Positions 1,052-18,669 of a stretch of DNA of 58,284 nucleotides are shown here, piece by piece. The position numbers were made by a program, and so were the translations under genes. Within the stretch, counting starts at the first letter, position 1. Each line of letters opens with the position of its first letter. Source of the stretch: Euprymna scolopes (lineage: Eukaryota); the NCBI GenBank assembly GCA_053919585.1, contig JBSSHM010000318.1. One strand, 5' to 3'. Under the pieces are notes generated by a model. That model had not been told where the DNA came from and searched no databases. It worked only from the letters and a program-made list of their open reading frames with translations.

Positions 1052-1826
1052 ATGAAAGCAGTGATTCTTGCCGGTGGGTTTGGTACACGTATTAGTGAAG
1101 AAACTCACACCAAACCAAAACCAATGATAGAAATTGGGGGCAAACCTATTTTGTGGCATATCATGAAAATTTACTCGCATTATGGGGTAAATGATTTCAT
1201 TATTTGTTGTGGATACAAGGGATATATTATTAAAGAATATTTTGCCAGCTATTTTTTGCATAATAGTGATATAACCTTTGATATGCAGAAGAATAAAATG
1301 CATATTCATAACAATCATTCAGAACCTTGGCAAGTCACCTTAATTGATACAGGTGTTGATACATTAACGGGTGGGCGATTAAAGAGAGTTTATCCACATA
1401 TTAAGGATTGTGAGTATATCCATTTTACTTATGGTGATGGATTATCTAATGTGGATATTAAAGAGCTTACTCGACATCACTTGAAGCATAAGCGTTTAGC
1501 AACTGTAACAGCAATTTACCCTCCCGGACGATTTGGTGCATTGGAATTGGAAGGTGATAGAGTCTGCTCGTTTATGGAAAAGCCAAGAGGAGATGGTTCA
1601 ATGGTTAATGGTGGTTTTTTTTGTGCTATCGCCTAAGCTATTGAATGACTACATTGAAGGAGATGAGTCCATATGGGAGCAAGAGTCCTTAATTCGCCTA
1701 TCTAAAGACAATCAGTTGACCGTTTACAGACATAATGGATTTTGGCAATCCATGGATACATTACGTGATAAGAATTTATTGCAGGAGTTATGGACAATCA
1801 ATCAAGCTCCGTGGAAGCATTGGTGA
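1052..1826 (+). CDS. rfbF: Glucose-1-phosphate cytidylyltransferase, split by one extra T in the T8 run at 1615-1622
   Basis: MKAVILAGGFGTRISEETHTKPKPM...TGGRLKR...NGGFF, continuing in the second frame as VLSP...GFWQSMDTLRDK...APWKHW. Confidence 0.9.
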
Positions 1827-1858
1827 TGGTGCATAATATGAAGATTTAAAAAACAGAT

Positions 1859-2926
1859 ATGAACAAAATTGTTAAACAGGATGTAGAATATATCCACAAT
1901 AAGTTTGTAAGCAGAGAAAAATTAAAAAATAGTACTATTATTATTACAGGTTGTGCTGGATTTTTAGGTTTTTATTTATTGCATTATTTACTTCATTATC
2001 AAAAAGATTTAGCGATAAAAAAAATTATTGGATTAGATAATTTTATGCTTAGCAAACCACAATGGATTGAGAATCTTAGCCAACAATATTCCTCTTTTTC
2101 ATTAATCAATTTTGATGTTATAAAAGATAATATTGCGGACATTGATGAGGCAGAAAATGCTAATTATATTATTCATATGGCCTCAATTGCTTCCCCTTCT
2201 TTTTATCGTCAATTCCCACTTGAGACCATGGAAGCCAATACCACGGGATTAAAAAAAATCATTGAGTTTTATAAAGATAAGCCAATTAAAGGTTTACTTA
2301 TGTTTTCCACCAGTGAAATTTATGGCGATCCAACACCTGAAAATATTCCTACGTCAGAGGAATATAGAGGTAATGTTGCTAGCATAGGTCCTCGTGCCTG
2401 TTATGACGAGGCCAAACGTTTTGCCGAAACGCTCTGCTATAACTACGCTAATGCCTACAATATGCCCATTACCTTAGTTCGTCCTTTTAATAATTATGGA
2501 CCAGGTATGTCTATTTATGATAAGAGAGTACCGGCAGATTTTGCCCAAGCGGTTATTCACAAAAGAGCAATAGAAATTCTTTCTGATGGACGTCCTACTA
2601 GAACATTTTGTTATATTGCTGATGCTATTGCAGGTTATTTATTAGCATTAACCTATGGAAAATTTGATGTATTTAATATCGGTTATGATGGTAATGAGCA
2701 TTCTATTATTGAGCTAGCCAAACAATATGTTACTATAGCCAAGTCATGTTTTAATTATGATATAGAGATTAAATTTGAACAACCCACTGATAAAGAATAT
2801 CTTACCGATAATCCTAATCGTCGTTGTCCCATTATTCGTAAAGCTCGTGAGCGACTAGCCTACCAACCGGAAATCACGCTTGAAGTGGGTTTAGAAAAAT
2901 ACTTAACATTTTTAATTGAAGCATAG
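1859..2926 (+). CDS. Extended SDR, NDP-glucuronate decarboxylase (UXS / ArnA C-terminal-like)
   Basis: GCAGFLG NAD motif; HMASIASP, STSEIYGDP, RACYDEAKR (YxxxK) and RPFNNYGPGM match UXS-type enzymes. Confidence 0.75.
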   Translation: MNKIVKQDVEYIHNKFVSREKLKNSTIIITGCAGFLGFYLLHYLLHYQKDLAIKKIIGLDNFMLSKPQWIENLSQQYSSFSLINFDVIKDNIADIDEAENANYIIHMASIASPSFYRQFPLETMEANTTGLKKIIEFYKDKPIKGLLMFSTSEIYGDPTPENIPTSEEYRGNVASIGPRACYDEAKRFAETLCYNYANAYNMPITLVRPFNNYGPGMSIYDKRVPADFAQAVIHKRAIEILSDGRPTRTFCYIADAIAGYLLALTYGKFDVFNIGYDGNEHSIIELAKQYVTIAKSCFNYDIEIKFEQPTDKEYLTDNPNRRCPIIRKARERLAYQPEITLEVGLEKYLTFLIEA

Positions 2927-2944
2927 AGAAAATAGAGAGCTATT

Positions 2945-4225
2945 TTGAACAGCATTATTATTGGATTAGGTTTTGTTGGATTAACCAGTGCATTAGGATT
3001 AGCTGAGGCTGGGCATAAGGTTATAGGTGTTGAACAGGATGCTAAAAAATTAAAACTTTTACAAAGTGGGGAAATCCCTTTTTTTGAGCCAGAACTTGCA
3101 GATAAGCTAGGGCAACATAAAGATAAGCATTTTTTTTTAGCACCAACCATTGATGAGGCATTAAATTTATGCTCTCCTGATATTGTGATGATCTGTGTTG
3201 GTACACCATCACAACAAGATGGAGCAGTAGACTTAAGCTATGTGATTAGTGCGGTGCAACAAACTTGTGATGCATTGGGTAAACAAGCATGCACAATATG
3301 TATTAAATCGACAGTTCCACCTTCTTCAGCTCGTGATGTTTTACAGCCTTTACTAGATGGCTATGATAATTTACGTTTAACGAATAACCCAGAATTTCTT
3401 AGAGAAGGTTACGCATGGCAAGATTTTATGCAACCGGATCGCATTGTCATTGGTAGCGATTGCTCACAAGCACTCAACACGTTAGAGAGGCTTTATCGTT
3501 CTTTTTCATCCCCCATACATAAAGTTAGCCTCACTGAAGCTGAATTTATTAAGTATTTATCTAATACTCTGCTTGCTACCCTCATCAGCTTTGCTAACGA
3601 GCAATCGCAAATAGCTGATACCGTTGGTGATATTAACATACAAAAAGTTTTCACTATTTTGCATGAAGATAAACGTTGGCATGATTCATCAGGTACAAAA
3701 AAAACTGTCAATATGGCAAGCTACGTTTATCCCGGATGTGGTTTTGGTGGGTATTGTTTACCTAAAGACTTGCAGGCACTCATTAACCAAGCAGAAAAGC
3801 AAGGATTTACTCCTAACTTATTAAAGCAAGTCAATGAAGTCAATATTGGTATGATAGATTATCATGCACAAAAAATTATTCATCATACCAAGCAAGATGA
3901 TAAGATAGCTATCCTAGGATTAGCCTTTAAACCAAATTCTGATGATGTGCGAGATACTCCAGCTCATAAAATCATTGCTGCATTATTAAACGGTGATAGG
4001 AAGAATATACAATGTTATGACCCCGAGGCAATGACGACTTTTACTGAACATTATGATTTTCCCATAGCATACAAACCTAGCCTTGAGGAATGTGTAACTG
4101 ATGCAGATGTTATTGTTATTTGTACAGCATGGCAAGAGTTTACACACTTAGAAGACTTAGCAAGTTTTACTAAAATTAAACAACAAGATAAATTTTTTGA
4201 CTTGCGTTATTTTTTAGCTACTTAG
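2945..4225 (+). CDS. Nucleotide-sugar (UDP-glucose/GDP-mannose family) 6-dehydrogenase
   Basis: GLGFVG, CVGTP, KSTVPP, NPEFLREG, catalytic GFGGYCLPKD, GLAFKPNSDDVRD; TTG start. Confidence 0.9.
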   Translation: MNSIIIGLGFVGLTSALGLAEAGHKVIGVEQDAKKLKLLQSGEIPFFEPELADKLGQHKDKHFFLAPTIDEALNLCSPDIVMICVGTPSQQDGAVDLSYVISAVQQTCDALGKQACTICIKSTVPPSSARDVLQPLLDGYDNLRLTNNPEFLREGYAWQDFMQPDRIVIGSDCSQALNTLERLYRSFSSPIHKVSLTEAEFIKYLSNTLLATLISFANEQSQIADTVGDINIQKVFTILHEDKRWHDSSGTKKTVNMASYVYPGCGFGGYCLPKDLQALINQAEKQGFTPNLLKQVNEVNIGMIDYHAQKIIHHTKQDDKIAILGLAFKPNSDDVRDTPAHKIIAALLNGDRKNIQCYDPEAMTTFTEHYDFPIAYKPSLEECVTDADVIVICTAWQEFTHLEDLASFTKIKQQDKFFDLRYFLAT

Positions 4226-4229
4226 AAAT

Positions 4230-4757
4230 ATGGAATTTATGCATAGCAAATTAGCAGGAGTTTTTTTGATTAAGCATGTGCAACATGCCGATGATCGTGG
4301 TTATTTTACACGGTTGTTTTGTAACAAGGAAATACAAGCAATTACTAGCAATTCAGCATTTGTGCAATCCAATTTTTGCCACACTCAACAAGCCCATACT
4401 TTCCGTGGTTTGCACTATCAAGTTGCCCCACACAGTGAAGCAAAAATAATCAAATGTATGAATGGCGAGATTATTGATGTGGTTGTGGATATGCGTGATG
4501 ATTCACCCACTTATCTACAGAGCTTAGAGATAAATTTAAAAGCAGATGAACCCATGATGATATTTGTTCCAGAGGGATTTGCCCATGGCTATCTTTCTTT
4601 ACAAGATGATACAAAAATTATTTATTTTACGAATAACCACTATCATCTCGAGGCAGAAAGAGGATTGAATCCCTTAGACCCTAAACTCAATTTAGAAGTT
4701 AAAGATAAAATTAAAATTTTGTCAGATAAAGACAAAAACGCCCCATTCTTGTCTTAA
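4230..4757 (+). CDS. RmlC/RfbC-family NDP-4-keto-sugar 3(,5)-epimerase
   Basis: DDRGYF, RGLHYQ, DVVVDMR, VPEGFAHGY, LSDKD. Confidence 0.85.
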   Translation: MEFMHSKLAGVFLIKHVQHADDRGYFTRLFCNKEIQAITSNSAFVQSNFCHTQQAHTFRGLHYQVAPHSEAKIIKCMNGEIIDVVVDMRDDSPTYLQSLEINLKADEPMMIFVPEGFAHGYLSLQDDTKIIYFTNNHYHLEAERGLNPLDPKLNLEVKDKIKILSDKDKNAPFLS

Positions 4758-4788
4758 CGCCTACTATCACAAATACATAAATATCTGC

Positions 4789-5193
4789 GTGCCTAAGATT
4801 GATAGAAGAATAACATTTATTTTTGTCGGCTTTTTGGGTGCAGGGTCAGATTTTGCCATATTTTGGTTTTTATATACGATCATTCTTCTTAATCCAATTA
4901 TTGCCAATATTATCTCTTTTCATATTGCGGTGATGGTTGGATTGATCTTGCAAGCACGATTGACTTTTGCTTTATCGCTTGGCATTAAGCAAATACTCAT
5001 GCGATACTCTTTTTCTTATATTATCCTTATGTATATTAACTTAGTGGCATCCTCTCTCATGTTATGGGCAGGCATTAGCTTTAGCACTATTTTGCCACTA
5101 TGGATTAAGTTATTTTCCATGGTGGTGATTGCCATTTGGAGTTACTTTATTCAAAAAAATATTATTTTCAAACAAGACTCTCTTGAAGTATGA
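4789..5193 (+). CDS. GtrA-family flippase
   Basis: 134 aa, four hydrophobic segments, F..VG...ANIISF...SYFIQKNIIF pattern, glycan-locus context. Confidence 0.8.
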   Translation: MPKIDRRITFIFVGFLGAGSDFAIFWFLYTIILLNPIIANIISFHIAVMVGLILQARLTFALSLGIKQILMRYSFSYIILMYINLVASSLMLWAGISFSTILPLWIKLFSMVVIAIWSYFIQKNIIFKQDSLEV

Positions 5194-6106
5194 CCATTCT
5201 TATTACTGGAGGAACAGGTTTTATAGGCAAACACCTCATTACTTATTTAACTAATCATTATCCCCATAAGCAGTTGATATTACTTGCTCGCAAAACTTCT
5301 GCTTGGCAATCCATTCATGCCATCACTCATAAGGTGCAAATCGCATATATTGAGCAAGGTATAGATGATTTATATCATCAAGATATAGAGGCGATTATCC
5401 ATCTTGCCACAGACTATGGCAAGAAAGATAAAAATAATCAGGTAAATATTCAGCAAATTAATCAAAGCAATGTTCAATTGGGTCTAGAACTATTAGCCTT
5501 AGCTGAATCCAAGCAAATTCCCTTTCTATATAGTGATACATTTTTATCCTTGCGGATAAAAATTATCCCTACATGAGGGAATACATACAATCTAAACGAC
5601 ATTTTTTTGAATGGCTATGCTACTATGCTCAGCAACAACGAGTTTGTGTGCATAATTTACGACTATTTCATCCGTTTGGAGAAGGCGATAAACCACAAAA
5701 ATTTTTCTCAACGATGATAAAAAAATGCCTAAACCATGAAGCTATTGATTTAACTGAAGGCTTACAGCAACGAGATTTTATCTACATACACGATGCTATC
5801 CAAGCTTTTAGCTGTGTGTTAGAGCATGCACTGAATACGCATGATAAAGAAAAGCAAAAAGAAAAAGTATGGTGGAATCACTATGAAGTGGGCTACGGCA
5901 CAGGCACATCCGTTCGTCAACTAGTGGAATGGATTAAACAATTTAGCCATTCTACCAGTCAGCTTAATTTTGGTGCAATTCCTATGCGTAAAGGTGAATT
6001 TGAGGGTGATTTTGCTAATCCTGAGGCACTCATAAATATTGGTTGGATACCACAATTTTCAGTTGAAACAGGAATTAAACAAGCCCTTGCTCAAAGCAAA
6101 CAATAA
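5190..6106 (+). CDS. RfbJ/RfbS-like CDP-4-keto-sugar reductase (SDR), split by a -1 frameshift at the T5 run 5541-5545
   Basis: GGTGFIG, IIHLATDYG; adding one T gives SDTFFILADKNYPYMREYIQSKRHF (YxxxK); NLRLFHPFG, QRDFIYIHD. Confidence 0.75.
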
Positions 6107-6281: not shown

Positions 6282-7298
6282 ATGAGTGAATTTACACACA
6301 CACAGCACACCACTATCAATATTCAAGCACAAAATACCAATCTTGAAGTCTTAAAAAAACACTTCTCGCATTGCTTTACTAAAGATGGCGAGCTCGATTT
6401 TGCTAAGCTTAAAACAGAACTATCACAAAATAACGATATAAACTTTTCAAAAGAGAGTTACTCTTTAGACTGGTTAGGGAAAAGCTATGCACGACTGTTA
6501 GCAACAGATAACGCAACTACTTTCCTTACAGAAGATACAACACACAATAACAAAGCAGAAAACAAAAACTCAAATAATCTACTTATAAAGGGTGATAACC
6601 TTGAAGTATTAAAGCACCTCTCCCATGCCTATCACGAAAAGGTAAAAATGATATATATAGACCCACCCTACAACACAGGGGGTGATGGTTTTGTACATCA
6701 AGCATTACAAAACTCTCATTTAGATTTAAAAAGCTCATTAAGTGCAACAAACATTAGACTATTAAAAAATAAGTTTAATGATTATTTAATGCACAAGGCT
6801 ATGACTAAGTTTGAAATAGGATATAAAAAAGTATCTAACACTATCCATCCCACCAAATTCACTGATAGTAAAGGAAAAGTGTTAAAAGAAGTTGATGCAA
6901 GTGATATTGGCGTGCATGAATCAACAGAGTCAGTTGCTGAAAAATATTTTATAGATGAACTGTTTTATGACTCTGAACTAGAAAAACAAAATATTCAAGA
7001 AAATATTAAAGAAGTTATCGTTTTTACCAAAATACCCAAAAACTCAATTAAAATACCCGTAGCAGGTGGCAAAAGTTACTCGCCAGATTTTGCCTATGTA
7101 GTAAAAAATACAGATGGTAACAAAAAATTAAACTTTGTAATAGAAACAAAAAATGTAGTGAGTGAAGAACACTTAAGACAAGAAGAACAACAAAAAATAG
7201 AATCTGCTAAAAAGCTATTTAATAATGATATTAGCATCACATTTAAAAGTCAGTTTAAAAATAAAAGAATCGAAGAAATTTTGCAGGAATTGAGTTAA
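6282..7298 (+). pseudogene. In-frame chimera of type III R-M Mod N-terminus and Res C-terminal PD-(D/E)xK nuclease domain (deletion remnant)
   Basis: N-part ESYSLDWLGKSYAR, NLLIKGDNLEVLKHL, MIYIDPPYNTG; C-part FYDSELEK, VFTKIPKNSIKIPVAGGKSYSPDFAYV, VIETK; junction near 6695. Confidence 0.8.
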
Positions 7299-7309
7299 TT
7301 AAATGAATC

Positions 7310-8302
7310 ATGAAAAAGGATAGTTTCTCAAAAGAACAAAAATTAGTAAGCGTGGTGATTCCTGTGTTGAATGAGCAGGACAATATTGAACATACTTTTG
7401 CAGAGTTGCAAAAATTATTTGCTAAGTTATCTGAGTATCAGTTTGAATTAATTTTCACGGATAATGCTAGTACGGATGAGAGCTATGCGATGTTGCAGAC
7501 ATTACAACAGGCTCATCCTGATTTGGTTCGGGTGTTTCGTTTTTCAAAAAACTTTGGTTATCAGGCATCGATTTTGACAGGTTATAAAAAGGCACGAGGT
7601 GATGCCATTGTGCAATTAGATTGTGATTTACAAGACCCACCAGAGATGATTGCAGATTTTCTTAAGCTATGGGAGAATGGTTATGCGGTGGTATATGGCG
7701 TGCGTACAAAACGAGATGAAAATTGGTTGATGGAGAAAACACGCAAGCTATTTTATCGACTAGCGAATTTTCTTTCAGAAGAGCCGTTGCCATTAGATGC
7801 AGGAGATTTTCGTTTGATTGATCGCAAAATCATGCAGGCATTGAATTACTTTCATGATGCACAGCCGTATTTACGAGGGGCAATCTCACAAATGGGTTTT
7901 AAGCAAATTGGGGTGGAGTATGAGCGACACCGCCGTCTACATGGAAAGTCTAATTTTTCTATTTTTAGCTTAACCTCTCTTGCTTTGGATGGTATTTTAA
8001 ATCATTCTATTATGCCATTGAGAATTGCCAGTTTAATTGGTGTGATTGTTTTTCCGCTATCAATACTTGTGTTTTTTGGTTATTTTATTGCTAAATTTTT
8101 GTTTTCAGGCACTATTCCTCAAGGCTTTACTACCATTGTGCTAATGTTAATCATTAGTATTGGTTTAAATGCTTTATTGTTGGGAATTATTGGTGAGTAC
8201 ATGGGCAGAATTTATAAACAGGTAAAGAATAAACCCTTGACAATTATTGATAAACAATGTGATCAATACAGTGAGGAGGATAGTAACATTACCCCACCGT
8301 AA
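7310..8302 (+). CDS. GtrB/ArnC-like family 2 glycosyltransferase
   Basis: VVIPVLNE, DNASTD, FSKNFG, LDCDLQDPP, GDFRL, two C-terminal TMs ending LGIIGEYMGRIY. Confidence 0.9.
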   Translation: MKKDSFSKEQKLVSVVIPVLNEQDNIEHTFAELQKLFAKLSEYQFELIFTDNASTDESYAMLQTLQQAHPDLVRVFRFSKNFGYQASILTGYKKARGDAIVQLDCDLQDPPEMIADFLKLWENGYAVVYGVRTKRDENWLMEKTRKLFYRLANFLSEEPLPLDAGDFRLIDRKIMQALNYFHDAQPYLRGAISQMGFKQIGVEYERHRRLHGKSNFSIFSLTSLALDGILNHSIMPLRIASLIGVIVFPLSILVFFGYFIAKFLFSGTIPQGFTTIVLMLIISIGLNALLLGIIGEYMGRIYKQVKNKPLTIIDKQCDQYSEEDSNITPP

Positions 8303-8446
8303 ATGAGGGTTTAATGGGGTAGTGTGTAGGTTTATCTGTGGGGAGAGATTATTCACATTTAAAATCACCTCATTACCAATCACCTCATCAGCTAATCTAT
8401 ATAGAAAAAAAGACAAAATATTGAATGGGATAAGGCGTTATAGACG

Positions 8447-9535
8447 TTATAAATGGACATCTCTACGATGGTTTTGGGTTTTAGGCAATAGATAGTAATA
8501 GAGGGAGAGATAGAGCATGATAAAGATTAATAGTGCGGTTAAGGTGAGAGTAGAATTGTGATAAGTCAATAGTGAGGCAACCATAGGTAGGGTAGCGAAA
8601 AGGTATAGGAATAAGCTTGTCATGGTGTGTGCCCAGCGTTGGCTTTTTTTCTGATTGCGTTTGTGTGGCAAAATCACTCTTTTGTAAACGAGCATATGTA
8701 GGTGCAGACCATCGGGTTGTCCAGGGGACATTTTTCGTAATACTTTTTTTCGATACATAGAAAATAAAGTTTCAATAATCGGGTAGCTCATAATCAGGAA
8801 TCCACTCCAAGGAGTAATCATATTGTGGCGAGTAACTAATAAGACCGCAATTTCTGCTAAAACAAATCCGATGGTGTATGCCCCACCATCACCCATAAAA
8901 ATTTTTCCCCAGTAAAAATTCCATAGAAGAAAACCTAAAATGGCAAAGATGAGTAATAGGCAAGTGATGAGTATAAAATTATCGTCTAGACTTATGGCAA
9001 TGAGAGTAAAGGTACTTGCAGCAAGAATGCTTACACCACCCATCAAACCATTATAGCCATCAATAATATTGATAGAATGTGCAACACCGCCTACAGCAAA
9101 CATGGTGAATATCAAAGATAGCCACCACCATTGACTTAAGCCATCATCAAATAAGTAAACCCCCACACGATGTAATTGAGCATCAACAAATAACCAAGCA
9201 AGTCCGGCGGCAATAAAGGTGAACCATAGGCGTTTAGTGGGGGAGACTTTTTCGCTTATATCCTCACCAATGCCACTTAGAAAAGCAGGTAAAGCACAGA
9301 GAAAGAGTCCGATTAGGGATGAGTTTTGAACTAGTGTGGCACTGATTAACAAGGATAGATAGATAGCGATACCACCCAAACGAGGTACGGCTATTGAATG
9401 AAATTTTTGTGGAGAATGAGAGGGAGAATCTAATCCAATGGTGAATTTTTTTGCAAGCCATATGGTTAAGGCACAGCTGATGAAACTGATGGTTAAGGTG
9501 AGAATGCTTAGGGTTAACGGAATAGCAGTCAACAT
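8447..9535 (-). CDS. WecA/WbpL-like polyprenyl-phosphate HexNAc-1-phosphate transferase (MraY/Glycos_transf_4)
   Basis: PRLGG, NIIDGYNGL, IFMGDGG, PDGLHLH; polytopic membrane protein. Confidence 0.85.
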   Translation of the reverse strand: MLTAIPLTLSILTLTISFISCALTIWLAKKFTIGLDSPSHSPQKFHSIAVPRLGGIAIYLSLLISATLVQNSSLIGLFLCALPAFLSGIGEDISEKVSPTKRLWFTFIAAGLAWLFVDAQLHRVGVYLFDDGLSQWWWLSLIFTMFAVGGVAHSINIIDGYNGLMGGVSILAASTFTLIAISLDDNFILITCLLLIFAILGFLLWNFYWGKIFMGDGGAYTIGFVLAEIAVLLVTRHNMITPWSGFLIMSYPIIETLFSMYRKKVLRKMSPGQPDGLHLHMLVYKRVILPHKRNQKKSQRWAHTMTSLFLYLFATLPMVASLLTYHNSTLTLTALLIFIMLYLSLYYYLLPKTQNHRRDVHL

Positions 9536-9538
9536 AAT

Positions 9539-10678
9539 TTATTCAATTCTTTGCCAGCGATTACCACTTAATGCTTTGATTTTTCCTTGTAGTTCTAGAG
9601 TAAGGAGAAGTGTGGTAAGCGTTTCAGGTGAGAAAGAGGTGTGTTTGGCAATTTCTTCTGTGCGGATGATTTCATAACCCATTGCCGTTAGAATTTTTTG
9701 CTGCTCTGGTGAAAGCTGGTTTACTTCATTATCCCAATTGGGTAAGTTATTTTGGGTGGAATTAGGTATGACTTGTTTTAAAAGTGGTAGGTTAATCTCA
9801 TCGAGAATATCTTGGGTATTTTGTGTTAATTTTGCACCTTGTTGAATGAGGAGGTGACAACCTTCAGATAGTGGGCTTTGAATGGAACCTGGTACGGCAA
9901 AAACGTCTCTCCCTTGTTCGCCTGCTAATCTTGCTGTAATCATTGAACCACCTGTTCGTTTGCTCTCAATGACGATTACTCCATGTGTGGATAAGCCACA
10001 AATTAGTCGATTTCTTGGTGGAAAATTCCCGCCCTTGGGTTGTGTTCCTAAAGGCAGTTCGCTGACTAATAAGCCATTTTCTTTAATAATCGTATCGGCA
10101 ATTTTTTGATTGGATTTGGGGTAAATAATGTCAATTCCTGTACCCATAAAGGCAACGGTTACTCCCTTTGCAGATAAAGCTCCCATATGAGCACAGGTAT
10201 CAATACCTAATGCCAATCCACTGCATATTGATAATCCTTGCAAGCTGAGTTCATAGGCGAATTTTTGTGTGGTCTTTAAGCCAAATGGTGTGGCTTGTCG
10301 GCTACCAATAATGGCAATATTTGGATGCTCAAAAGCAGATAGGTTGCCACGTGCGTATAGAATAGCTGGTGGGTCAGGGAGTTCGCGAAAAGAAGGGGGG
10401 TAGGATGGGCAGTTATAACCAATAATATGATGAGTCTGGGATTGTGCTAGCCATGTTTTGATGGTATGAATAGTGTGTTGAGAACAGGGCGTTTGTGCGG
10501 CACGATGGATTTTTTCTGTGATACCAATTTGCTGCCATTCTACTGCTGTTTTTTGTAGTGCTTTATCGGCACTAGTGAAAGCTTCCATTAAGCATCCGAA
10601 TGTAAGTTTGCCAAGTCCTTTTGTAAAAGCAAGCTGCAAACATGAGGATAATGCAGGTTGAGTTAAGTCGTATGACAT
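9539..10678 (-). CDS. dprA: DNA-processing protein DprA
   Basis: IAIIGSR, SGLALGID, FPPRNRLI, SMITARLA.EQGRDVFAVPG, C-terminal winged helix. Confidence 0.95.
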   Translation of the reverse strand: MSYDLTQPALSSCLQLAFTKGLGKLTFGCLMEAFTSADKALQKTAVEWQQIGITEKIHRAAQTPCSQHTIHTIKTWLAQSQTHHIIGYNCPSYPPSFRELPDPPAILYARGNLSAFEHPNIAIIGSRQATPFGLKTTQKFAYELSLQGLSICSGLALGIDTCAHMGALSAKGVTVAFMGTGIDIIYPKSNQKIADTIIKENGLLVSELPLGTQPKGGNFPPRNRLICGLSTHGVIVIESKRTGGSMITARLAGEQGRDVFAVPGSIQSPLSEGCHLLIQQGAKLTQNTQDILDEINLPLLKQVIPNSTQNNLPNWDNEVNQLSPEQQKILTAMGYEIIRTEEIAKHTSFSPETLTTLLLTLELQGKIKALSGNRWQRIE

Positions 10679-10720
10679 AGGTTAGATGAGGATATCAATG
10701 AAATGGTGGTTGATTGGAAA

Positions 10721-11956
10721 TTATAATTTTACCTTGTATTGGCTTCGCTTATTGTCATTATTATGGTTTTCCATAGTCTTGATTTTTTCTAGTATAACAA
10801 TGCTTTCAATGTGATGTGTGTAGGGAAATTGATCAAATAAAGCAAGTTGGGTAATGCGGTGAGAATTTAGTGTGTTAAGGTTCGCTATTAATGTAAGGGG
10901 ATTGCAAGAAATGTAGATAATGCGTTGGAATTTTTGTAAAAACTGCAAAGTGTTATTATCAATTCCACTTCTTGGTGGATCAACCAGTACAGTAGAAAAT
11001 TGATAATCACTCAGAGGAATACTCTTTAAACGATTGAATGAGCGGTAGCCACTTAATGCTTGGGAAGTTTCTTCTGCTGATAGGCGGACAAAATGAATAT
11101 TGTGCATGTTGTTTTTTGCTTTTGCTAGATTGGCAAGTTTCAGTGATTCTCTCACCACTTCTGTTGCTAGCACTTGGCGAAATTGCTTAGCTAGAGCAAT
11201 AGTAAAATTACCATTTCCACAATATAGCTCAAGTAAATCCATATTTTGTTCAGGGTTGGAGGATAGATGTTTGCTTACCCATGCTAACATTTGTGTATTA
11301 ATGAGGGCATTGGGTTGTGTAAAGGTATTATCATCTTGTAAGTAGGTGTAGGTTTGTTCGCCTAGGGTTATTGTGTAGTCAATATAGCCTTGCTTACAAA
11401 ACCAGTGTTTTTTGTGTGAACGTACAATAATATTCCAGTGATATTTTTGCTGTAGTTCAGAGATTTTTTTTAGAAATTGTGGTTTTTTTTTCTCAATATC
11501 TTGACGATAGATAAGTGTAATGAGTAGTTCATTTTGTAAGTTAGTGCGAAAATTGATTTGTTGACAACGCTCGGCAAGAATGGGATGTTTATTGATTTCA
11601 GTCATTAAAATTGGCATGGCTTCACTAATGGCTAATGCAGAGTGTTGGCATGTTTGTATGGCTATGGGTTGTTTGTTTATGCGATCAAACATGGCATAAG
11701 CCAATTCGTGATCAAATTTGCGTATGGCAAATTCTATGCGATAGCGAAAATGACTGGCTGGTGAGTGAAAGAATTCTATCTCATCTAAATGTGGTGGTTG
11801 ATGATTTAAATGCTCAGAAAATTGAGAGAGCCAATAGTTTTTTTTATAGTGAGCTTGTTCAAGATAGCATTTTTCATCTGCTTGGCAAAATTTAAATTGT
11901 TGCCAATAGCTAGCATATTGCTGATTAGTTATGGTTGTAGTCTTTGAATTTTCCAT
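10721..11956 (-). CDS. trmA: tRNA/tmRNA (uracil-5)-methyltransferase
   Basis: FTQPN, LLELYCGNGNF, VDPPRSG, YISCNP, FDQFPYTHHIE; exact start uncertain. Confidence 0.9.
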   Translation of the reverse strand: MENSKTTTITNQQYASYWQQFKFCQADEKCYLEQAHYKKNYWLSQFSEHLNHQPPHLDEIEFFHSPASHFRYRIEFAIRKFDHELAYAMFDRINKQPIAIQTCQHSALAISEAMPILMTEINKHPILAERCQQINFRTNLQNELLITLIYRQDIEKKKPQFLKKISELQQKYHWNIIVRSHKKHWFCKQGYIDYTITLGEQTYTYLQDDNTFTQPNALINTQMLAWVSKHLSSNPEQNMDLLELYCGNGNFTIALAKQFRQVLATEVVRESLKLANLAKAKNNMHNIHFVRLSAEETSQALSGYRSFNRLKSIPLSDYQFSTVLVDPPRSGIDNNTLQFLQKFQRIIYISCNPLTLIANLNTLNSHRITQLALFDQFPYTHHIESIVILEKIKTMENHNNDNKRSQYKVKL

Positions 11957-12567
11957 TGTGAGGTAGCGTTGTCCCAGAGGTAACTTAGACGATCATGTAA
12001 GCGATTGGTACGACCTTGCCAAAATTCCCAGTAGTGAGGTTTTAAACGGTATCCAGCCCATTTTTCTGGGGTTGGGACATAATCTGGATATTGTGCTTCA
12101 AAAAGGGAAAAGTTTTTTTCTAGTTCTTCACGACTAGCAATGAAGTCGCTTTGTTCCGATGCGGCTGTGGCGTGTTGATTACCTAGGGGACGGCTTTGAA
12201 AATAATCATTAACGCACTCTCTATCTAATTCTATTATGTTGCCACTTACACGTACTTGACGATTAAATTCTCGCCAGAAAAAAAGTATTTGACCTTGTGG
12301 ATTGTTGCTAATATGTTTGCCTTTTTCACTATTTCTGTTGCCGTAGAAAACAAGTCCCTCCTCATCGAGTTGACGCAACAATAAATATCGAGCACCTACT
12401 TCTCCAGTGTGATCAGCAGTAGCTAGGCAACAAGCATGGTAATCAGGAATATTTTCCTGTTTTGCTTGATCTAACCACTCTTGGAGCTGTTCATGAGGTG
12501 TGGTTTTTAAGTCGCTTTTTTCTAGTTGAGAAAATGTATATTGCGTACGTGAGTGGTATAAAGACAT
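11929..12567 (-). CDS. pdxH: Pyridoxamine 5'-phosphate oxidase
   Basis: RQVRV, YFQSRP, ASEQS, EFWQGRTNRLHDR, RLQP. Confidence 0.95.
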   Translation of the reverse strand: MSLYHSRTQYTFSQLEKSDLKTTPHEQLQEWLDQAKQENIPDYHACCLATADHTGEVGARYLLLRQLDEEGLVFYGNRNSEKGKHISNNPQGQILFFWREFNRQVRVSGNIIELDRECVNDYFQSRPLGNQHATAASEQSDFIASREELEKNFSLFEAQYPDYVPTPEKWAGYRLKPHYWEFWQGRTNRLHDRLSYLWDNATSQWKIQRLQP

Positions 12568-12680
12568 AAGCGTAATATTTTTTGCTGTATTTTCGTAAAA
12601 AGTCAGTAAGCTAGTGTTGTATAAAATGCTAAAATATACAACGATTGTGAAATATAGAACACCATTAAAAATTATAAAAC

Positions 12681-14570
12681 ATGATAAAAAAATATGATGC
12701 TTCAGCGATTGAAGTATTAACGGGTTTAGATCCAGTGCGTAAGCGTCCAGGTATGTATACCAATACGCAAGATCCTAATCATATCGCACAGGAGGTGATT
12801 GATAATAGCGTTGATGAAGCTCTTGCCGGCTATGCTAATCAAATTAAGGTATTCATTGCTTTGGATGGTTCTATGCGTGTGGAGGATAATGGCAGAGGAA
12901 TGCCCGTGGATGAACACCCTGAGCAGAAACGTAGCGGGGTTGAGGTAATTCTTACAACGTTGCATGCAGGTGGTAAATTTTCTGATAGCAATTATCAATT
13001 TTCTGGGGGGTTGCATGGTGTGGGTATTTCGGTGGTGAATGCCTTAAGTAGCAAGTTACAAGTTCAGGTTAAGCGTGATTCAGGGTTGTATTCAATTGAT
13101 TTTAAGGATGGAGCTGCACTGACTCCTTTACAGTTGGTTGGTAAAGTTGGCAAAAATAATACAGGTACGATAGTGCATTTTCATCCTGATGAGGGGTTTT
13201 TTGAGAGAGCTAAATTTAATACGAAGAGTCTGAAAGCTTTTTTATGTGCCAAAGCAGTTTTGTGTGCAGGATTGAAAATTGAATTAGAGATTGAAGCCTT
13301 CGGTGAGGAATCCAATGAAAAAGTCTCTTGGCAGTATGAGGGAGGTATATCAGAGTATTTAAAAAGTTCATTAGTTAATTGTGTGCGTTTGCCTGATGAG
13401 GTGATTCATGCTGAAAGTAGTGATGATAGCGGTAGTGTTGATGTGGCACTGACGTGGTTGCCAGAGTTTGGTAGCATGATTAATGAAAGTTATGTCAATG
13501 CTGTGCCGACAACTGAGGGGGGCACACATGTGAATGGTTTACGTTCAGGTTTAACTGATGCCATTCGTGAATTTTTAGACATTCATCATTTATTACCACG
13601 TAGTATAAAAATTACGGCTGAAGATGTTTGCAAAAACCTTGTTTATGTGTTGGCTATTAAGATGAAAGACCCACAGTTTTTGGGACAGACAAAGGAGCGA
13701 CTATCTTCACGAGAGGTGGTGAGCCAAGTATCACAAGTGGTTAAGGATTGTTTATCCCTATGGCTCAATCAACATATGGATGTTGCTCGTAAGATTTGTG
13801 ACTTAATTATAGATAGTGCCAGACAACGGCAAAATAGCAGTCAAAAAACTGTGCGAAAAAAGGTTGCCAGTGGTCCTGCTTTACCGGGGAAACTAACCGA
13901 TTGTATCTCACAAGATATTGAACAAACAGAGTTATTTTTAGTTGAGGGGGATTCAGCAGGAGGGTCTGCCAGGCAGGCACGAGATAAAAGTTTTCAAGCG
14001 ATTATGCCTTTGCGTGGGAAAATTTTAAATACATGGGAAGTTTCGCCTCAGCAAGTACTTTCTTCAGATGAAATTCATGATATTTCTGTGGCAATAGGGG
14101 TTGAACCAAATGCGTTTAGTATGGAAAAGTTACGTTATGGTAAGATATGTATTTTAGCGGATGCGGATTCAGATGGTTTGCATATTGCGACGCTGTTATG
14201 TGCATTGTTTTTAAGGCATTTTCGTGTATTAGTGGAGAGAGGGCATATATTCATTGCTATGCCACCGCTATATCGTATAGACATGGGCAAGGAAACACGT
14301 TACGCCATTGATGCAGAGGAAAGAGATCATATTATTAATAGTTATTCAGGCAATGCAAATGTGCAAATTACTCGCTTTAAAGGTTTGGGAGAAATGAATC
14401 CATTACAACTTCGTGAATCCACCTTACATCCAGATACTAGACGCCTCATCCAATTAACAGTGGATGAGGAGAGTAACTCTATGGATATGATGGATAAATT
14501 ATTGGGAAAAAAACGTGTAATGGATAGAAAGATTTGGCTAGAAGAAAAAGGTGATCTAGCTGATGTCTAA
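12681..14570 (+). CDS. parE: DNA topoisomerase IV subunit B
   Basis: GLDPVRKRPGMY, DNSVDEALAG, LVEGDSAGGSA, PLRGKILNTWE, ILADADSDG, RFKGLGEMNP; 629 aa. Confidence 0.95.
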   Translation: MIKKYDASAIEVLTGLDPVRKRPGMYTNTQDPNHIAQEVIDNSVDEALAGYANQIKVFIALDGSMRVEDNGRGMPVDEHPEQKRSGVEVILTTLHAGGKFSDSNYQFSGGLHGVGISVVNALSSKLQVQVKRDSGLYSIDFKDGAALTPLQLVGKVGKNNTGTIVHFHPDEGFFERAKFNTKSLKAFLCAKAVLCAGLKIELEIEAFGEESNEKVSWQYEGGISEYLKSSLVNCVRLPDEVIHAESSDDSGSVDVALTWLPEFGSMINESYVNAVPTTEGGTHVNGLRSGLTDAIREFLDIHHLLPRSIKITAEDVCKNLVYVLAIKMKDPQFLGQTKERLSSREVVSQVSQVVKDCLSLWLNQHMDVARKICDLIIDSARQRQNSSQKTVRKKVASGPALPGKLTDCISQDIEQTELFLVEGDSAGGSARQARDKSFQAIMPLRGKILNTWEVSPQQVLSSDEIHDISVAIGVEPNAFSMEKLRYGKICILADADSDGLHIATLLCALFLRHFRVLVERGHIFIAMPPLYRIDMGKETRYAIDAEERDHIINSYSGNANVQITRFKGLGEMNPLQLRESTLHPDTRRLIQLTVDEESNSMDMMDKLLGKKRVMDRKIWLEEKGDLADV

Positions 14571-14644
14571 GATTAAACAACGTTTGTATATACTTATATA
14601 TTCTCATGAGTAGTAGCTTCCACATGGAATCATAGAAACAAGAT

Positions 14645-16279
14645 ATGTTTAAAGAAACTCTCGTTATTATTGGCTTTATTGATCGTATCAAAAGCATTTT
14701 GATTGCGATTTTACTTGCTTCAATTGGTAATAATGTTTTATTTATTATTCTGCCAATTAATCTTGAGATGAATGGCATATCTACTTCTGTGATTGGTTGG
14801 GTGATGGCAGGATATTCATTAGGTATCTTTTTGGGAAGTCAATATGGACATATTATAATTTCCCAAGTTGGACATATTCGTAGCTATGCTGCTGTTGGGG
14901 CAATGGTGAGTATGATTGCTAGCTTGCATGTATTTGTTGAGTATGAGTGGGCAGTTTTATTGATGCGTATTGTGGTGGGTATGGCAATGTCAATTATTTA
15001 TCTCACCCTAGAGAGTTGGCTTAATGCTACCAGTGAAAGCAATTCTCGAGGAACTATCTACTCGTTGTATCAATTCTCCTATGGTTTAGGTTTACTTGCT
15101 GCTCCATTTGTGGCAACGATTTTTGATCCAAGTGATTTACGTGCCTTTAGTTTGGTTACCCTATTTGTTTCATTATCACTGGTACCACTGGTGATGACGA
15201 ATTTTAAAACCCCACAAATTATTGGTAATCAAGAAAAACTACCGATCATAGAGATGGTTAGGGATACGCCTAGTGGAGCAGTAATGGCAATGTTTGCCGG
15301 TGGGTGTGTTTCTGCTCTAACCTCTTTACTGGCTTTATTTGGTACGTGGATGGAGTTAAGTGGTAGTCAATTATCTATATTAATGGCTGCGGCTATTGGA
15401 AGTTCTATCTTATTACAAATTCCCGTTGGTAAGCTGGCTGATAAATTTGATGCACGTTATTTGCTACTAGCTTTGAACATTGTTGCAACAATCAGTTCAT
15501 TTTTTGTGTTATGGTGTATTTATTTTGAAAGTAATTGGCTATGGATTGTTTTGTGTGCGGCAATTTTAGGAAGTTGTTTTTTCTGTATGTATCCATTGTG
15601 TATCAAGTTTGTTTTCAATCAAATGGATGCTGAAAAATCAATTCCTGCAATGAGTACATTATTGATTATTTTTAGTATTGGTGCAGTAGTAGGACCAATT
15701 GTTGCTTCCTTATTTATGCAGTTTATTGCTCCATGGGGACTCTTTATTTTCTTTTTTATCAGTATGCTAATTGCTTCCTTATTTATGCTTTATCGAGTGT
15801 TACGTAGCAGTTCACCAGAGCTTGATGAAGAAAGTGTTCCCTATATGATCACGATAAAAATGCTCCGCCCAATGAGTGTCAATCTTGATCCAAGAATGGA
15901 TTATTTGATGACTAAAATGGATAATACCGCCATTAAAACCTTAGCTAATACCATTGCAATATCTCCAGTTAAAACTCAAACACTCATTGAGAGTTATACA
16001 GAATATTTAGAAGGGTTTACTCCGGAGGAGATACTGACATCACTAGTGTTGCATAAACCTCGTTTATCTAAGACAATTATTCGTGCGATGCGTAATATTC
16101 ATCCAGATAAAGAAATTGATTTTGCCTATGCCTTAAGAGATTTGATTTCACTCAATAAATCCAATATTAATCAGTTACTGCTTAAAGGCTTAATCCATAA
16201 AGTCGATGATGAGTTAATGATGCAAATTAAGGCATTATTTGAAGAATTTATTACACCTCTAAATGAGAATAATAGTTAG
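14645..16279 (+). CDS. MFS transporter (YcaD-like) with a soluble C-terminal extension of about 130 aa
   Basis: VGHIRSY, ESWLN...RG, QIPVGKLADKFD, about 12 TM segments. Confidence 0.85.
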   Translation: MFKETLVIIGFIDRIKSILIAILLASIGNNVLFIILPINLEMNGISTSVIGWVMAGYSLGIFLGSQYGHIIISQVGHIRSYAAVGAMVSMIASLHVFVEYEWAVLLMRIVVGMAMSIIYLTLESWLNATSESNSRGTIYSLYQFSYGLGLLAAPFVATIFDPSDLRAFSLVTLFVSLSLVPLVMTNFKTPQIIGNQEKLPIIEMVRDTPSGAVMAMFAGGCVSALTSLLALFGTWMELSGSQLSILMAAAIGSSILLQIPVGKLADKFDARYLLLALNIVATISSFFVLWCIYFESNWLWIVLCAAILGSCFFCMYPLCIKFVFNQMDAEKSIPAMSTLLIIFSIGAVVGPIVASLFMQFIAPWGLFIFFFISMLIASLFMLYRVLRSSSPELDEESVPYMITIKMLRPMSVNLDPRMDYLMTKMDNTAIKTLANTIAISPVKTQTLIESYTEYLEGFTPEEILTSLVLHKPRLSKTIIRAMRNIHPDKEIDFAYALRDLISLNKSNINQLLLKGLIHKVDDELMMQIKALFEEFITPLNENNS

Positions 16280-16324
16280 GTTTTAACTGATTAAAAAGAG
16301 GGTGCATATTAATTTTAGTCAGAT

Positions 16325-17794
16325 TTAGACATTTTCTTGATGTCTATGAGCAATGGATTTAAGATATTCTTGTGTAACATCACCGGTGCTGTATTTTCCA
16401 TCAAAACAAGAGGTATCAAAATCGTGAATAGAGGGATTTGAACCACTGGTTTTGACTGCGGTAATTAAATCATCAAGGTCTTGATAAATGACCCTGTCTG
16501 CACCAATTTTTTCAGCAACTTTTTCAGGAGTTTTCATCTGATAAGCAATCAGGTCTTCTTGATTAGGCATATCAATACCGTAAACATAGGGGAAAAATAT
16601 CGGTGGAGAAGCGGAAGCGATATAGACTTTTTTTGAACCTGCTTGACGGGCCAGTGAGACAATCTCTTTGGAGGTGGTTCCTCGTACAATGGAATCATCT
16701 ACAAGCATAACTTTTTTTCCTTTAAATTCTGAGGTAACGGGGTTGAGTTTACGTTTGACTGATTTTTTTCTTGTCTTTTGTCCAGGCATGATAAAAGTTC
16801 TGCCAATGTAACGGTTTTTAATAAGTCCTTCGGTATAGTCAATATTTAATACTTTTGCCATTTCTAGAGCACTGGTGCGACTGGTATCAGGTATGGGCAT
16901 AATGACATCAATATCTTCAGGTGACATGACACGTTTGATTTTTTCTGCTAAATAGTGTCCCATGTTTTTTCTAGCTTGATGTACGGATAGACCATCTACA
17001 ATGGAGTCTGGACGAGAGAAATAAACATATTCAAAAATGCATGGGCTGTAGAATTGTGTGCTAGTGCATTGATGACTAAGTAGTTGTCCATCTAGTGTAA
17101 TGTAGATGGCTTCACCTGGTTTGACGTCTCGTTCGATTTCAAAATCTTGTGTCGTTAAGGCAATGCTTTCAGAGGCTACTGCCCATTCGGTTGTGCCTTT
17201 GTATTCTCGTTTTCCTAAAATTAATGGACGTAATCCATGTGGATCACGAAAAGCAATGATGCCATAGCCAACAATTAAGCCAACTGTAGCATAGGCACCT
17301 TTCGCTCGTTTATTTACCCCTTCAATCGCTTTAAACAATGCTTCAGGTTGTAGCTTAAGATCTCCATGTGTATAGAGTTCATCAGCAAAAAGATTGAGAA
17401 GTACTTCTGAATCTGAGCGAGTATTAATGTGCCGTTTATCTCTAGCAGAGAGTTCACTGGCTAGTTGACTGGAATTGATTAGGTTGCCATTGTGGGACAG
17501 TGCAATACCATAGGGAGAGTTAACATATAGAGGTTGTGCTTCTTTTTTGGTGTAGCATCCAGCAGTTGGGTAGCGAACATGCCCAATACCGATATGACCG
17601 CTAAGATAATTCATATGACGTGTTCGATAGACTTCTCGTACATACCCATTATTTTTACGTAACTTTAATTCATTTTTATCTAAAGTTGCAATGCCAGTGG
17701 AGTCTTGACCACGGTGTTGGAGGAGGGTTAGTCCATCAAATAATAATTGGTTAACTTGTCTTTTAGGAGAATAAATGCCGATAATACCACACAT
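16325..17794 (-). CDS. purF: Amidophosphoribosyltransferase
   Basis: MCGI, LQHRGQD, HVRYPTAG, CIFEYVYF, VDDSIVRGTT. Confidence 0.97.
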   Translation of the reverse strand: MCGIIGIYSPKRQVNQLLFDGLTLLQHRGQDSTGIATLDKNELKLRKNNGYVREVYRTRHMNYLSGHIGIGHVRYPTAGCYTKKEAQPLYVNSPYGIALSHNGNLINSSQLASELSARDKRHINTRSDSEVLLNLFADELYTHGDLKLQPEALFKAIEGVNKRAKGAYATVGLIVGYGIIAFRDPHGLRPLILGKREYKGTTEWAVASESIALTTQDFEIERDVKPGEAIYITLDGQLLSHQCTSTQFYSPCIFEYVYFSRPDSIVDGLSVHQARKNMGHYLAEKIKRVMSPEDIDVIMPIPDTSRTSALEMAKVLNIDYTEGLIKNRYIGRTFIMPGQKTRKKSVKRKLNPVTSEFKGKKVMLVDDSIVRGTTSKEIVSLARQAGSKKVYIASASPPIFFPYVYGIDMPNQEDLIAYQMKTPEKVAEKIGADRVIYQDLDDLITAVKTSGSNPSIHDFDTSCFDGKYSTGDVTQEYLKSIAHRHQENV

Positions 17795-17898
17795 GAGATA
17801 ATGTTTAAAATATTGTTGGAATAGAAAGATGATAGAAGGGGAAGAGAGTAGTGGTTGTTAATGTGAGAGTTTCTATCATTATGCTGGTTGTTTATTTT

Positions 17899-18669
17899 TT
17901 ATCGCCACTTTCGTAGTGTCGCAAAGACATCTACGGGTTTATCAAGCAGTTGTTCTGCGTAGTCTTCACATGCTGCTTTTATCTCAGGTTGATCACAACG
18001 CCAAAAAGGGTTAACTAAATGTTCGGTTTCTACTGTGCTACAGCCATTATAGAGATGATTTTGTTTGCATAATTCAATGTGTGTGTAAATATGCGAGTTA
18101 TTTTTTTCAACTTTTTTGGCAAAATAAAGATTCTCTAAGGTATAGTCATGTCCATAGTAAAGCATGGTTTTACTAGGCAGTTGCATGATTTTTTTTGTTG
18201 AGGACCAAAAAGTTTGGGCATCTCCTTCAAATAGCCCTCCAGCTCCGGCTCCAAATACGGTATCACCAACAAAGCAAAGTTGCTTTTCAGCACTGTAATA
18301 ACAGATGTGATCAAGGGTGTGTCCAGGCGTTTCAATAACTTCAAAGTGAGTATGCACACCTTCACTTAATATTTTGTCCCCTTCTTGCAATGGATGAGTA
18401 ATAAATTTGCATGGTGATTCCTTAGGACCGTAAACTTTACTGTTTGGAAATTCTTTTAGTAGTGTAGGTATGCCATCAGTATGATCGTAATGATGATGGG
18501 TGATGAGAATATCACAGACAGAAAGAGAATGTTTTTTGAGATAGTTTATGATGGGTTCTGCATAACCTGGATCAACAATAGTTGCTACAGATTGCTCTTC
18601 TGATTGCATAATCCATATAAGATTATTCATCCCAGATTCAAATCCAGCAGGAACAGAATTTATTTGCAT
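17899..18669 (-). CDS. gloB: Hydroxyacylglutathione hydrolase (glyoxalase II)
   Basis: THHHYDH, TPGHT.DH, GDT.F, GHDYT. Confidence 0.85.
   Translation of the reverse strand: MQINSVPAGFESGMNNLIWIMQSEEQSVATIVDPGYAEPIINYLKKHSLSVCDILITHHHYDHTDGIPTLLKEFPNSKVYGPKESPCKFITHPLQEGDKILSEGVHTHFEVIETPGHTLDHICYYSAEKQLCFVGDTVFGAGAGGLFEGDAQTFWSSTKKIMQLPSKTMLYYGHDYTLENLYFAKKVEKNNSHIYTHIELCKQNHLYNGCSTVETEHLVNPFWRCDQPEIKAACEDYAEQLLDKPVDVFATLRKWR

Follow-up and report, generated by a model that had tools for sequence, protein, structure and literature searches.

The 58,284-nucleotide stretch of DNA analyzed here (contig JBSSHM010000318.1 of a Euprymna scolopes assembly, GCA_053919585.1; hereafter, the window) carries a sugar-nucleotide operon that is probably a cytidine diphosphate (CDP)-based counterpart of the pathways that decarboxylate uridine diphosphate (UDP)-glucuronate. 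The operon lies on the + strand and contains, in order, rfbF, a UDP-xylose synthase (UXS)-type short-chain dehydrogenase/reductase (SDR), a nucleotide-sugar 6-dehydrogenase, an RmlC-like gene, a GtrA gene, a second extended SDR and a family 2 glycosyltransferase (GT2). A previous interpretation made from the letters alone (the sequence-only reading) had described the first six genes (1052-6106) as a co-oriented run and had proposed that the dehydrogenase and decarboxylase replace the dehydratase that normally follows RfbF, leading to a CDP-pentose. This proposal is supported and is consistent with all of the computational tests that were run. Translations and Pfam and NCBIfam scans placed all six genes at the same coordinates and on the same strand, so the run as such stands, with the correction that single-base indels in T runs, one per gene, break both rfbF and the second SDR. 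These two frameshifts, the continuation of the operon into the GT2 and a restriction-modification remnant were absent from the sequence-only reading.

In the proposed pathway, RfbF would form CDP-glucose from cytidine triphosphate and glucose-1-phosphate, the dehydrogenase would oxidize C6 to give CDP-glucuronate, and the UXS-type SDR would oxidize C4 and decarboxylate the sugar to a CDP-4-keto-pentose. The RmlC-like enzyme would then invert C3, and the second SDR would reduce C4 with NADPH to yield a CDP-pentose. Since C5 of a pentose bears no substituent, the epimerase could change only C3; with C4 reduction following, the product would therefore be of the D-ribo or L-lyxo configuration, a stereochemistry deduced from the chemistry. 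In this lineage, the ArnC/GtrB-like GT2 would load the pentose onto undecaprenyl phosphate, GtrA would aid its passage across the membrane, and an ArnT-like GT-C glycosyltransferase would then place it on a periplasmic acceptor such as lipopolysaccharide (LPS).

Conservation of the RfbF, decarboxylase and dehydrogenase genes

A scan of one genome per species, using patterns taken from the UXS-type SDR at position 1859 (the 1859 SDR) alone, identified at least 568 relatives. The best 80 loci of these relatives were combined with loci from protein look-ups into a non-redundant set of 83 loci, all chosen by the SDR only. They span Bacteroidota, Bacillota, Campylobacterota, Chloroflexota, Pseudomonadota, Planctomycetota and archaea, and carriers of the triad formed by rfbF, the SDR and the dehydrogenase include Campylobacter jejuni capsule loci, Helicobacter, Prevotella/Bacteroides and Bacillus/Priestia. 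Conserved synteny, which the sequence-only reading had suggested looking for among five enzymes, is seen for the triad: the dehydrogenase lies immediately 3' of the SDR on the same strand in 81 of the 83 loci, and RfbF is found in 66 and is directly upstream in 41. Where at least 3 kb of sequence is available on both flanks (64 loci), RfbF occurs in 54 (84%). For each of the 61 RfbF homologues scanned, TIGR02623 was the only model matched at E <= 1e-60.

The usual dehydratase partner is rare in these loci. Within 7 kb of the triad SDR, the 83 loci together contain 45 other SDRs, of which only 3 match the CDP-glucose 4,6-dehydratase model, and the possibility that an rfbG product supplies the epimerase and reductase is correspondingly weakened, with none in the window and a dehydratase nearby in at most 3 of the 83 loci. 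The absence of rfbG and RfbH from the run itself was also confirmed, as tblastn of the 58-kb window gave no other extended SDR and no DegT/RfbH-like gene. RfbF is thus without a dehydratase partner in most loci, and the dehydrogenase is the obvious consumer of CDP-glucose. The pair could in principle belong to an ordinary UDP pathway of the Ugd/UXS or Ugd/ArnA type, with rfbF supplying CDP-glucose to an unrelated branch or sugar; characterized members of the dehydrogenase and decarboxylase families mostly use UDP-sugars, and 17 of the 83 loci have no RfbF in the DNA examined. This alternative is unlikely, since UDP-glucose is a housekeeping metabolite and yet the RfbF equivalog accompanies the pair in 84% of the well-flanked loci, with no CDP-glucose 4,6-dehydratase present to use its product.

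The genes that most often accompany the triad encode DegT aminotransferases (28 loci), RmlC-like proteins (28 loci), DRL-type oxidoreductases (PF21135; 20 of the 83 loci, e.g., L026 and L039), thiamine pyrophosphate (TPP) enzymes (10 loci), HMGL-like enzymes (8 loci) and sugar C-methyltransferases (7 loci). Described fates of nucleotide-linked 4-keto-pentoses involve aminotransferases, TPP enzymes or an epimerase and a reductase, and L-lyxose has been proposed to arise by C3 epimerization followed by an inverting C4 reduction (PMC10338323). Because four of these frequent neighbors (aminotransferases, RmlC-type epimerases, TPP enzymes and C-methyltransferases) act on 4-keto sugars, the SDR family would appear to release the 4-keto-pentose at least in part, and the recurring DRL-type, TPP and HMGL-like genes hint at branched-chain pentoses made from the same hub. 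On balance, we lean toward the broader view that RfbF, a CDP-glucose 6-dehydrogenase and a CDP-glucuronate decarboxylase form an unrecognized and very widespread three-gene unit, found in more than 500 bacterial and archaeal species. Its CDP-4-keto-pentose would be the common starting point for a family of CDP-pentoses of surface glycans, made by the action of epimerases, reductases, aminotransferases, C-methyltransferases and TPP enzymes.

The C. jejuni capsule loci (L002-L004, about 9188-17990) contain rfbF, a UXS-like SDR, the dehydrogenase, RmlC and four SDRs without a family assignment. The same capsule type also carries a flavin amine-oxidase-type mutase and a UDP-galactopyranose mutase, and no 4,6-dehydratase. 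It offers a culturable system for what may be a CDP-pentose, perhaps a furanose.

Catalytic signatures and the nucleotide pocket

The 1859 SDR (1859-2926, + strand) combines a UXS signature, an N-terminal helix and a cytosine-type pocket, and is proposed to be an NAD-dependent CDP-glucuronate decarboxylase. Exact-protein look-up returned no identical protein on record, and the protein stays below every NCBIfam equivalog cutoff. Among solved structures, human UDP-xylose synthase, UXS1, is its closest relative (E 1.6e-48, 169 bits), followed by the next family at 88 bits; the second-best solved relative is 8V4G (E 5e-24), in an alignment that starts at residue 1. Against the CDP-glucose 4,6-dehydratase model TIGR02622, the protein scores 45 bits, below the cutoff of 278. 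RmlB-type 4,6-dehydratases carry an Asp-Glu pair after the catalytic Thr, and the 1859 SDR reads Ser-Glu at this site. The residue after strand 2 is acidic (Asp60, with Asp or Glu in 84 of 84 family members), as in NAD-binding enzymes.

The UXS group is marked in human UXS1 by Thr118, Tyr147 and Lys151 together with Ser119, Glu120 and Arg277, of which the Glu and Arg are replaced by Ser and Thr in uronate 4-epimerases (PMC3438964). These marks map to T151, S152, E153, Y182, K186 and R248 in the 1859 SDR, and none of the six positions varies among the 84 family members, apart from a choice of Ser or Thr at position 151. The extended-SDR fold and the Pfam models are common to all of these enzymes, so that a uronate C4 epimerase or a 4,6-dehydratase, whose product would stay a hexose derivative, might look broadly similar. 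Such an activity is very improbable, given that S152, E153 and R248 distinguish UXS from the uronate 4-epimerases (PMC3438964). UXS1 is, moreover, ahead of the next solved relative by about 80 bits, and the Asp-Glu pair of 4,6-dehydratases is not seen. The full UXS signature, UXS1 as top match and the low TIGR02622 score together indicate that the 1859 SDR is not a 4,6-dehydratase, an identity that would have undone the sequence-only reading.

The AlphaFold model of the 1859 SDR has a mean predicted local distance difference test (pLDDT) score of 87, with a confident helix at residues 3-15. Its best fold matches are UXS1 and 8V4G/8V4H, with 8V4H having the top TM-score by query length because it covers the N-terminal helix. 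This N-terminal extension is conserved across the SDR family, in which D8 is invariant.

Preference for cytosine over uracil is commonly achieved with an acidic side chain that accepts hydrogen bonds from the amino group of cytosine. The 8V4G entry is the CDP-bound structure of the CDP-6-fructose reductase of C. jejuni HS5.17. In that structure, the Asp212 side chain and the main-chain amides of Phe226 and Thr227 contact the cytosine, whose carbonyl is close to the hydroxyl of Thr227 and on whose ring Tyr295 stacks; a long helix N-terminal to the Rossmann fold was described as unique to that enzyme (PMC10918830). In a phmmer alignment with 8V4G, D227 and S242 of the 1859 SDR correspond to Asp212 and Thr227 with high posterior probability, and Y314 corresponds to Tyr295 with low posterior probability. 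All three residues (D227, S242 and Y314) are invariant in 84 of 84 SDR family members, and the corresponding positions in human UXS1 hold Asn, Gly and a gap. The aligned residues indicate that the 1859 SDR family has a cytosine-type pocket. The agreement of D227 and S242 with a CDP-bound structure, and their difference from the UDP-specific UXS1, argue further against an ordinary UDP pathway. The invariant Asp227 could serve as a simple sequence marker separating CDP-type from UDP-type SDRs.

The dehydrogenase (2945-4225, + strand) is the proposed CDP-glucose 6-dehydrogenase. All three UDPG_MGDP_dh Pfam domains (PF03721, PF00984 and PF03720) are above cutoff, and the translation contains the stretch GGYCLPKD, whose Cys we take to be the catalytic Cys of this family. 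The protein passes the broad subfamily model TIGR03026 only (350 bits) and misses the UDP-glucose dehydrogenase equivalogs TuaD (253 bits against a cutoff of 700), AglM (268 against 670) and PRK15057 (91 against 757). Falling under every one of these cutoffs also counts against the UDP alternative. Its best solved relatives score only about 200 bits, and the CalS8 structure is a weak match (97 bits).

The next gene (4230-4757, + strand) encodes an RmlC-like cupin epimerase, the proposed 3-epimerase of the CDP-4-keto-pentose. Membership is established for the PF00908 superfamily only (E 1.5e-53), as the TIGR01221 score of 141 bits is under the cutoff of 155.75; its solved relatives are RmlC and 3-epimerases. 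It is followed by a small membrane protein of the GtrA family (4789-5193, + strand; PF04138, E 6e-14), a putative helper in the translocation of lipid-linked sugars. The position of GtrA is kept in the two closest relatives of the cluster (L001 and L087), whose UXS-like SDRs are 76% identical to that of the window and whose gene order is rfbF, SDR, dehydrogenase, (methyltransferase), RmlC-like, GtrA, SDR and GT2. The methyltransferase is a class I enzyme encoded between the dehydrogenase and RmlC-like genes in L001 (12379-13062). At this site L087 has two short open reading frames (ORFs) only (3955-5022), and the window has nothing. The sugar may thus be methylated in some relatives.

Several observations weigh against a CDP-pentose pathway. 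There is no RfbF within 10 kb in about a fifth of the loci, and nucleotide specificity has been assigned from gene context and from three residue matches, one of which comes from a stretch that is aligned with low confidence. To our knowledge, characterized polyprenyl-phosphate GT2s use UDP- or GDP-sugars, and a CDP-sugar as donor for the GT2 of this cluster would depart from that usage. Both rfbF and the second SDR are frameshifted in the window, and the GT-C partner is outside it. Finally, the UXS gate residues E153 and R248 are conserved, and the enzyme might release CDP-xylose, which would be unusable by an RmlC-type enzyme. The corresponding Glu and Arg of human UXS1 retain the 4-keto intermediate (PMC3438964), and for ArnA and EvdS6 the released product was not predictable from active-site architecture (PMC10338323).

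Frameshifts and decayed genes in the window

The glucose-1-phosphate cytidylyltransferase gene rfbF (1052-1826, + strand) is not a single uninterrupted reading frame, as a +1 frameshift falls in a run of eight T (1615-1622) where seven would hold frame. The N-terminal piece (residues 1-191) passes the TIGR02623 equivalog cutoff of 300.25 by itself (329 bits), the C-terminal piece scores 94 bits, and the intact orthologue in L001 scores 437 bits. At the site of the break the L001 gene reads GGC TTT TTT GTT. A tblastn search with L001 RfbF matched its residues 19-209 to frame 2 (86% identity) and its residues 207-273 to frame 3 (78%). The rfbF of the relative L087 (797-1571) is likewise annotated in two parts, of 70 and 175 residues. 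That contig comes from a metagenome assembly, its name gives 2.83x coverage, and the split may be an assembly error.

The second extended SDR (5190-6106, + strand), the proposed NADPH-dependent C4 reductase, carries a -1 frameshift at a stretch of five T (5541-5545) where six would hold frame; L001 has TTT TTT at this site and reads through. The break sits between the catalytic Ser and the YxxxK motif, and positions 1-113 and 140-229 of the Pfam Epimerase model are split across the two pieces. The intact L001 protein (305 aa) matches frame 3 with residues 1-122 and frame 2 with residues 122-303 (tblastn). An Arg follows strand 2, as in NADP-binding SDRs, according to the motif read from the sequence. 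The label 'RfbJ/RfbS-like' that this gene had received found no specific support: no family-level match was obtained with the two fragments or with the intact L001 orthologue in a comparison made without an RfbJ/RfbS reference sequence, and an atlas search with the second SDR gave generic 'epimerase/dehydratase' clusters only. It is best described as a generic extended SDR.

The other genes of the window, roughly 45, show no comparable split. Two other candidate split genes proved to be separate genes (a sigma factor and its neighbor, and GFA and GATase). By a rough estimate, random consensus errors would give two indels in this 5-kb part of the 58-kb window in <1% of cases, and sequencing error is the less likely cause of the frameshifts. 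Because both genes are otherwise well preserved and the RfbF pieces have no further stops, the breaks are recent, reversible by slippage at the T runs, or consensus errors of the assembly. Phase variation at the T runs is possible in principle, with runs of 7/8 and 5/6 T being short. Given the frameshifts in rfbF and the second SDR, the pathway has probably been switched off or recently lost in this genome, and the window copy is probably not working at present.

Additional decay is seen downstream of the second SDR and at the edge of the window. A 1.2-kb insert that separates the second SDR from the GT2, and that is missing at this site in L001 and L087, contains a dead type III restriction-modification remnant (6282-7298, + strand; PF19778). 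Its ORF joins an N-terminal fragment of a DNA adenine methylase (NF008572 positions 7-87) to the C-terminal ~190 residues of a type III restriction endonuclease (NF012027 positions 790-982 of 986), and it is outside the sugar pathway. Beyond it lies the intact GT2 of the ArnC/GtrB/PgfS type (7310-8302, + strand; PF00535), a polyprenyl-phosphate glycosyltransferase by family that is 82% identical to its L001 copy (tblastn) and scores 220 bits with the NCBIfam PgfS model and 146 bits with ArnC (cutoff 529), both below cutoff. A second, decayed ArnC/GtrB-like GT2 copy occupies 5-852 on the - strand in three reading frames, with the L001 GT2 and small ORFs matching frames -1, -3 and -2 (tblastn) and NCBIfam PgfS and ArnC matches at 271-852. 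This copy is divergent from the operon and is also split in L001, into two ORFs (8238-8997). Since it is broken in both the window and L001, it may have decayed before the lineages split; alternatively, both assemblies err.

It is also conceivable that the cluster is simply a dead relic in this bacterium and makes no product, whatever the ancestral pathway was. Two homopolymer frameshifts and a 1.2-kb insertion in a space of about 6 kb, a second GT2 copy in decay and roughly 45 unsplit genes elsewhere in the window all fit this idea, while the broken genes are well preserved (86% and 78% identity to L001 for the two parts of RfbF) and the breaks must be very recent, reversible or assembly errors. 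We consider a relic to have slightly less than an even chance. This explanation is compatible with the CDP-pentose pathway as the ancestral function of the cluster.

The lipid-carrier branch can be followed further in L001, where the gene just upstream of the cluster encodes a membrane protein of 470 residues that has at least six hydrophobic segments. This protein gives a weak PMT_2 match (Pfam E 7e-4) and falls among ArnT/PMT_2 clusters in an atlas search (score 0.99). The expected site of such an ArnT-like gene in the window lies before the first base. On the 3' side, the operon is followed by a WecA-like gene, dprA, trmA, pdxH and parE. The first of these encodes a WecA/MraY-family phosphoglycosyl transferase (8447-9535, - strand; TIGR02380 99 bits, below cutoff) that flanks the cluster and is also found beside the L001 cluster (72% identity, tblastn); for a role in the pathway it is a positional candidate only. 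A tRNA scan and an Rfam scan of the whole window gave no match. The window is a dense bacterial contig of about 35% G+C with a parE of the Gram-negative type. The closest relatives of its ParE are four metagenome proteins (78-82% identity), ahead of those of other Gammaproteobacteria (about 62%). The contig apparently derives from an uncultured low-GC gammaproteobacterium that was co-assembled with the squid genome.

Relation to known nucleotide-sugar pathways

In the 8.4 million open-access papers and preprints searched, no CDP-glucuronate, CDP-glucose 6-dehydrogenase or CDP-pentose pathway was found. The only matches were to CDP-xylose, which in the cases checked is a ligand in crystals of CDP-glucose 4,6-dehydratase, and to a phage preprint on a different route that does not decide between UDP- and CDP-arabinose. 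Pentoses of bacterial glycans have so far been thought to come from UDP-glucuronate and, in a few antibiotic pathways, from thymidine diphosphate (TDP)-glucuronate. If the proposed pathway is correct, CDP-glucose 6-dehydrogenase and CDP-glucuronate decarboxylase would both be new enzyme activities, and the CDP-pentoses would be a new class of activated sugars. The pathway would also account for the hundreds of genomes in which rfbF is not paired with the usual dehydratase, and the names 'UDP-glucuronate decarboxylase' and 'UDP-glucose dehydrogenase' routinely given to these genes would need correction. It would further predict uncharacterized sugars in the capsule loci of culturable organisms such as C. 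jejuni.

Among known systems, the Arn pathway (Ugd, ArnA, ArnB, ArnC, ArnE/F and ArnT) resembles the pathway proposed for the cluster in using a 6-dehydrogenase and an SDR decarboxylase to reach a 4-keto-pentose, followed by transfer to undecaprenyl phosphate by a GT2, small membrane proteins that help in flipping, and periplasmic transfer by a GT-C enzyme, the last of which is seen here only beside L001, and weakly. Unlike in Arn, the nucleotide of the cluster is proposed to be CDP provided by a dedicated RfbF, the 4-keto-pentose would be epimerized and reduced rather than aminated and formylated, GtrA stands in place of ArnE/F, and the GT2 is below the ArnC cutoff (146 versus 529 bits). A dehydrogenase/decarboxylase pair acting on a non-UDP nucleotide is known from CalS8/CalS9 (and AtmS8/S9), the TDP-glucose dehydrogenase and TDP-glucuronate decarboxylase of the calicheamicin aminopentose route; in contrast to the cluster, CalS8/CalS9 and the everninomicin enzyme EvdS6 use TDP or UDP and belong to actinomycete secondary metabolism, not to surface glycans (PMC10338323).

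At the level of single enzymes, UXS1 and the UDP-xylose synthase of C. jejuni HS15.19 (PMC10615251) share the fold and the S/T, S, E, Y, K, R signature of the 1859 SDR, whereas the SDR family of the cluster adds an N-terminal helix and carries Asp, Ser and Tyr in place of the Asn, Gly and gap of UXS1. The HS5.17 enzyme (8V4G/8V4H) has a similarly atypical N-terminal helix, the cytosine-contacting Asp and Thr/Ser and probably the Tyr, but it is an NADPH reductase of an open-chain sugar and is without the UXS decarboxylase residues (PMC10918830). The RfbF/RfbG routes, including those to CDP-fucofuranose and CDP-6-deoxy-altrofuranose in C. jejuni HS:41, share with the pathway proposed for the cluster RfbF, CDP-glucose, an RmlC-type epimerase and an NADPH-dependent C4 reductase; they differ in that a 4,6-dehydratase makes a six-carbon 4-keto sugar, while the dehydrogenase and decarboxylase of the cluster would lose a carbon (PMC12369002). 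In the proposed pathway, the cluster pairs the nucleotide used by CDP-6-deoxyhexose routes with reactions known from the UDP and TDP routes.

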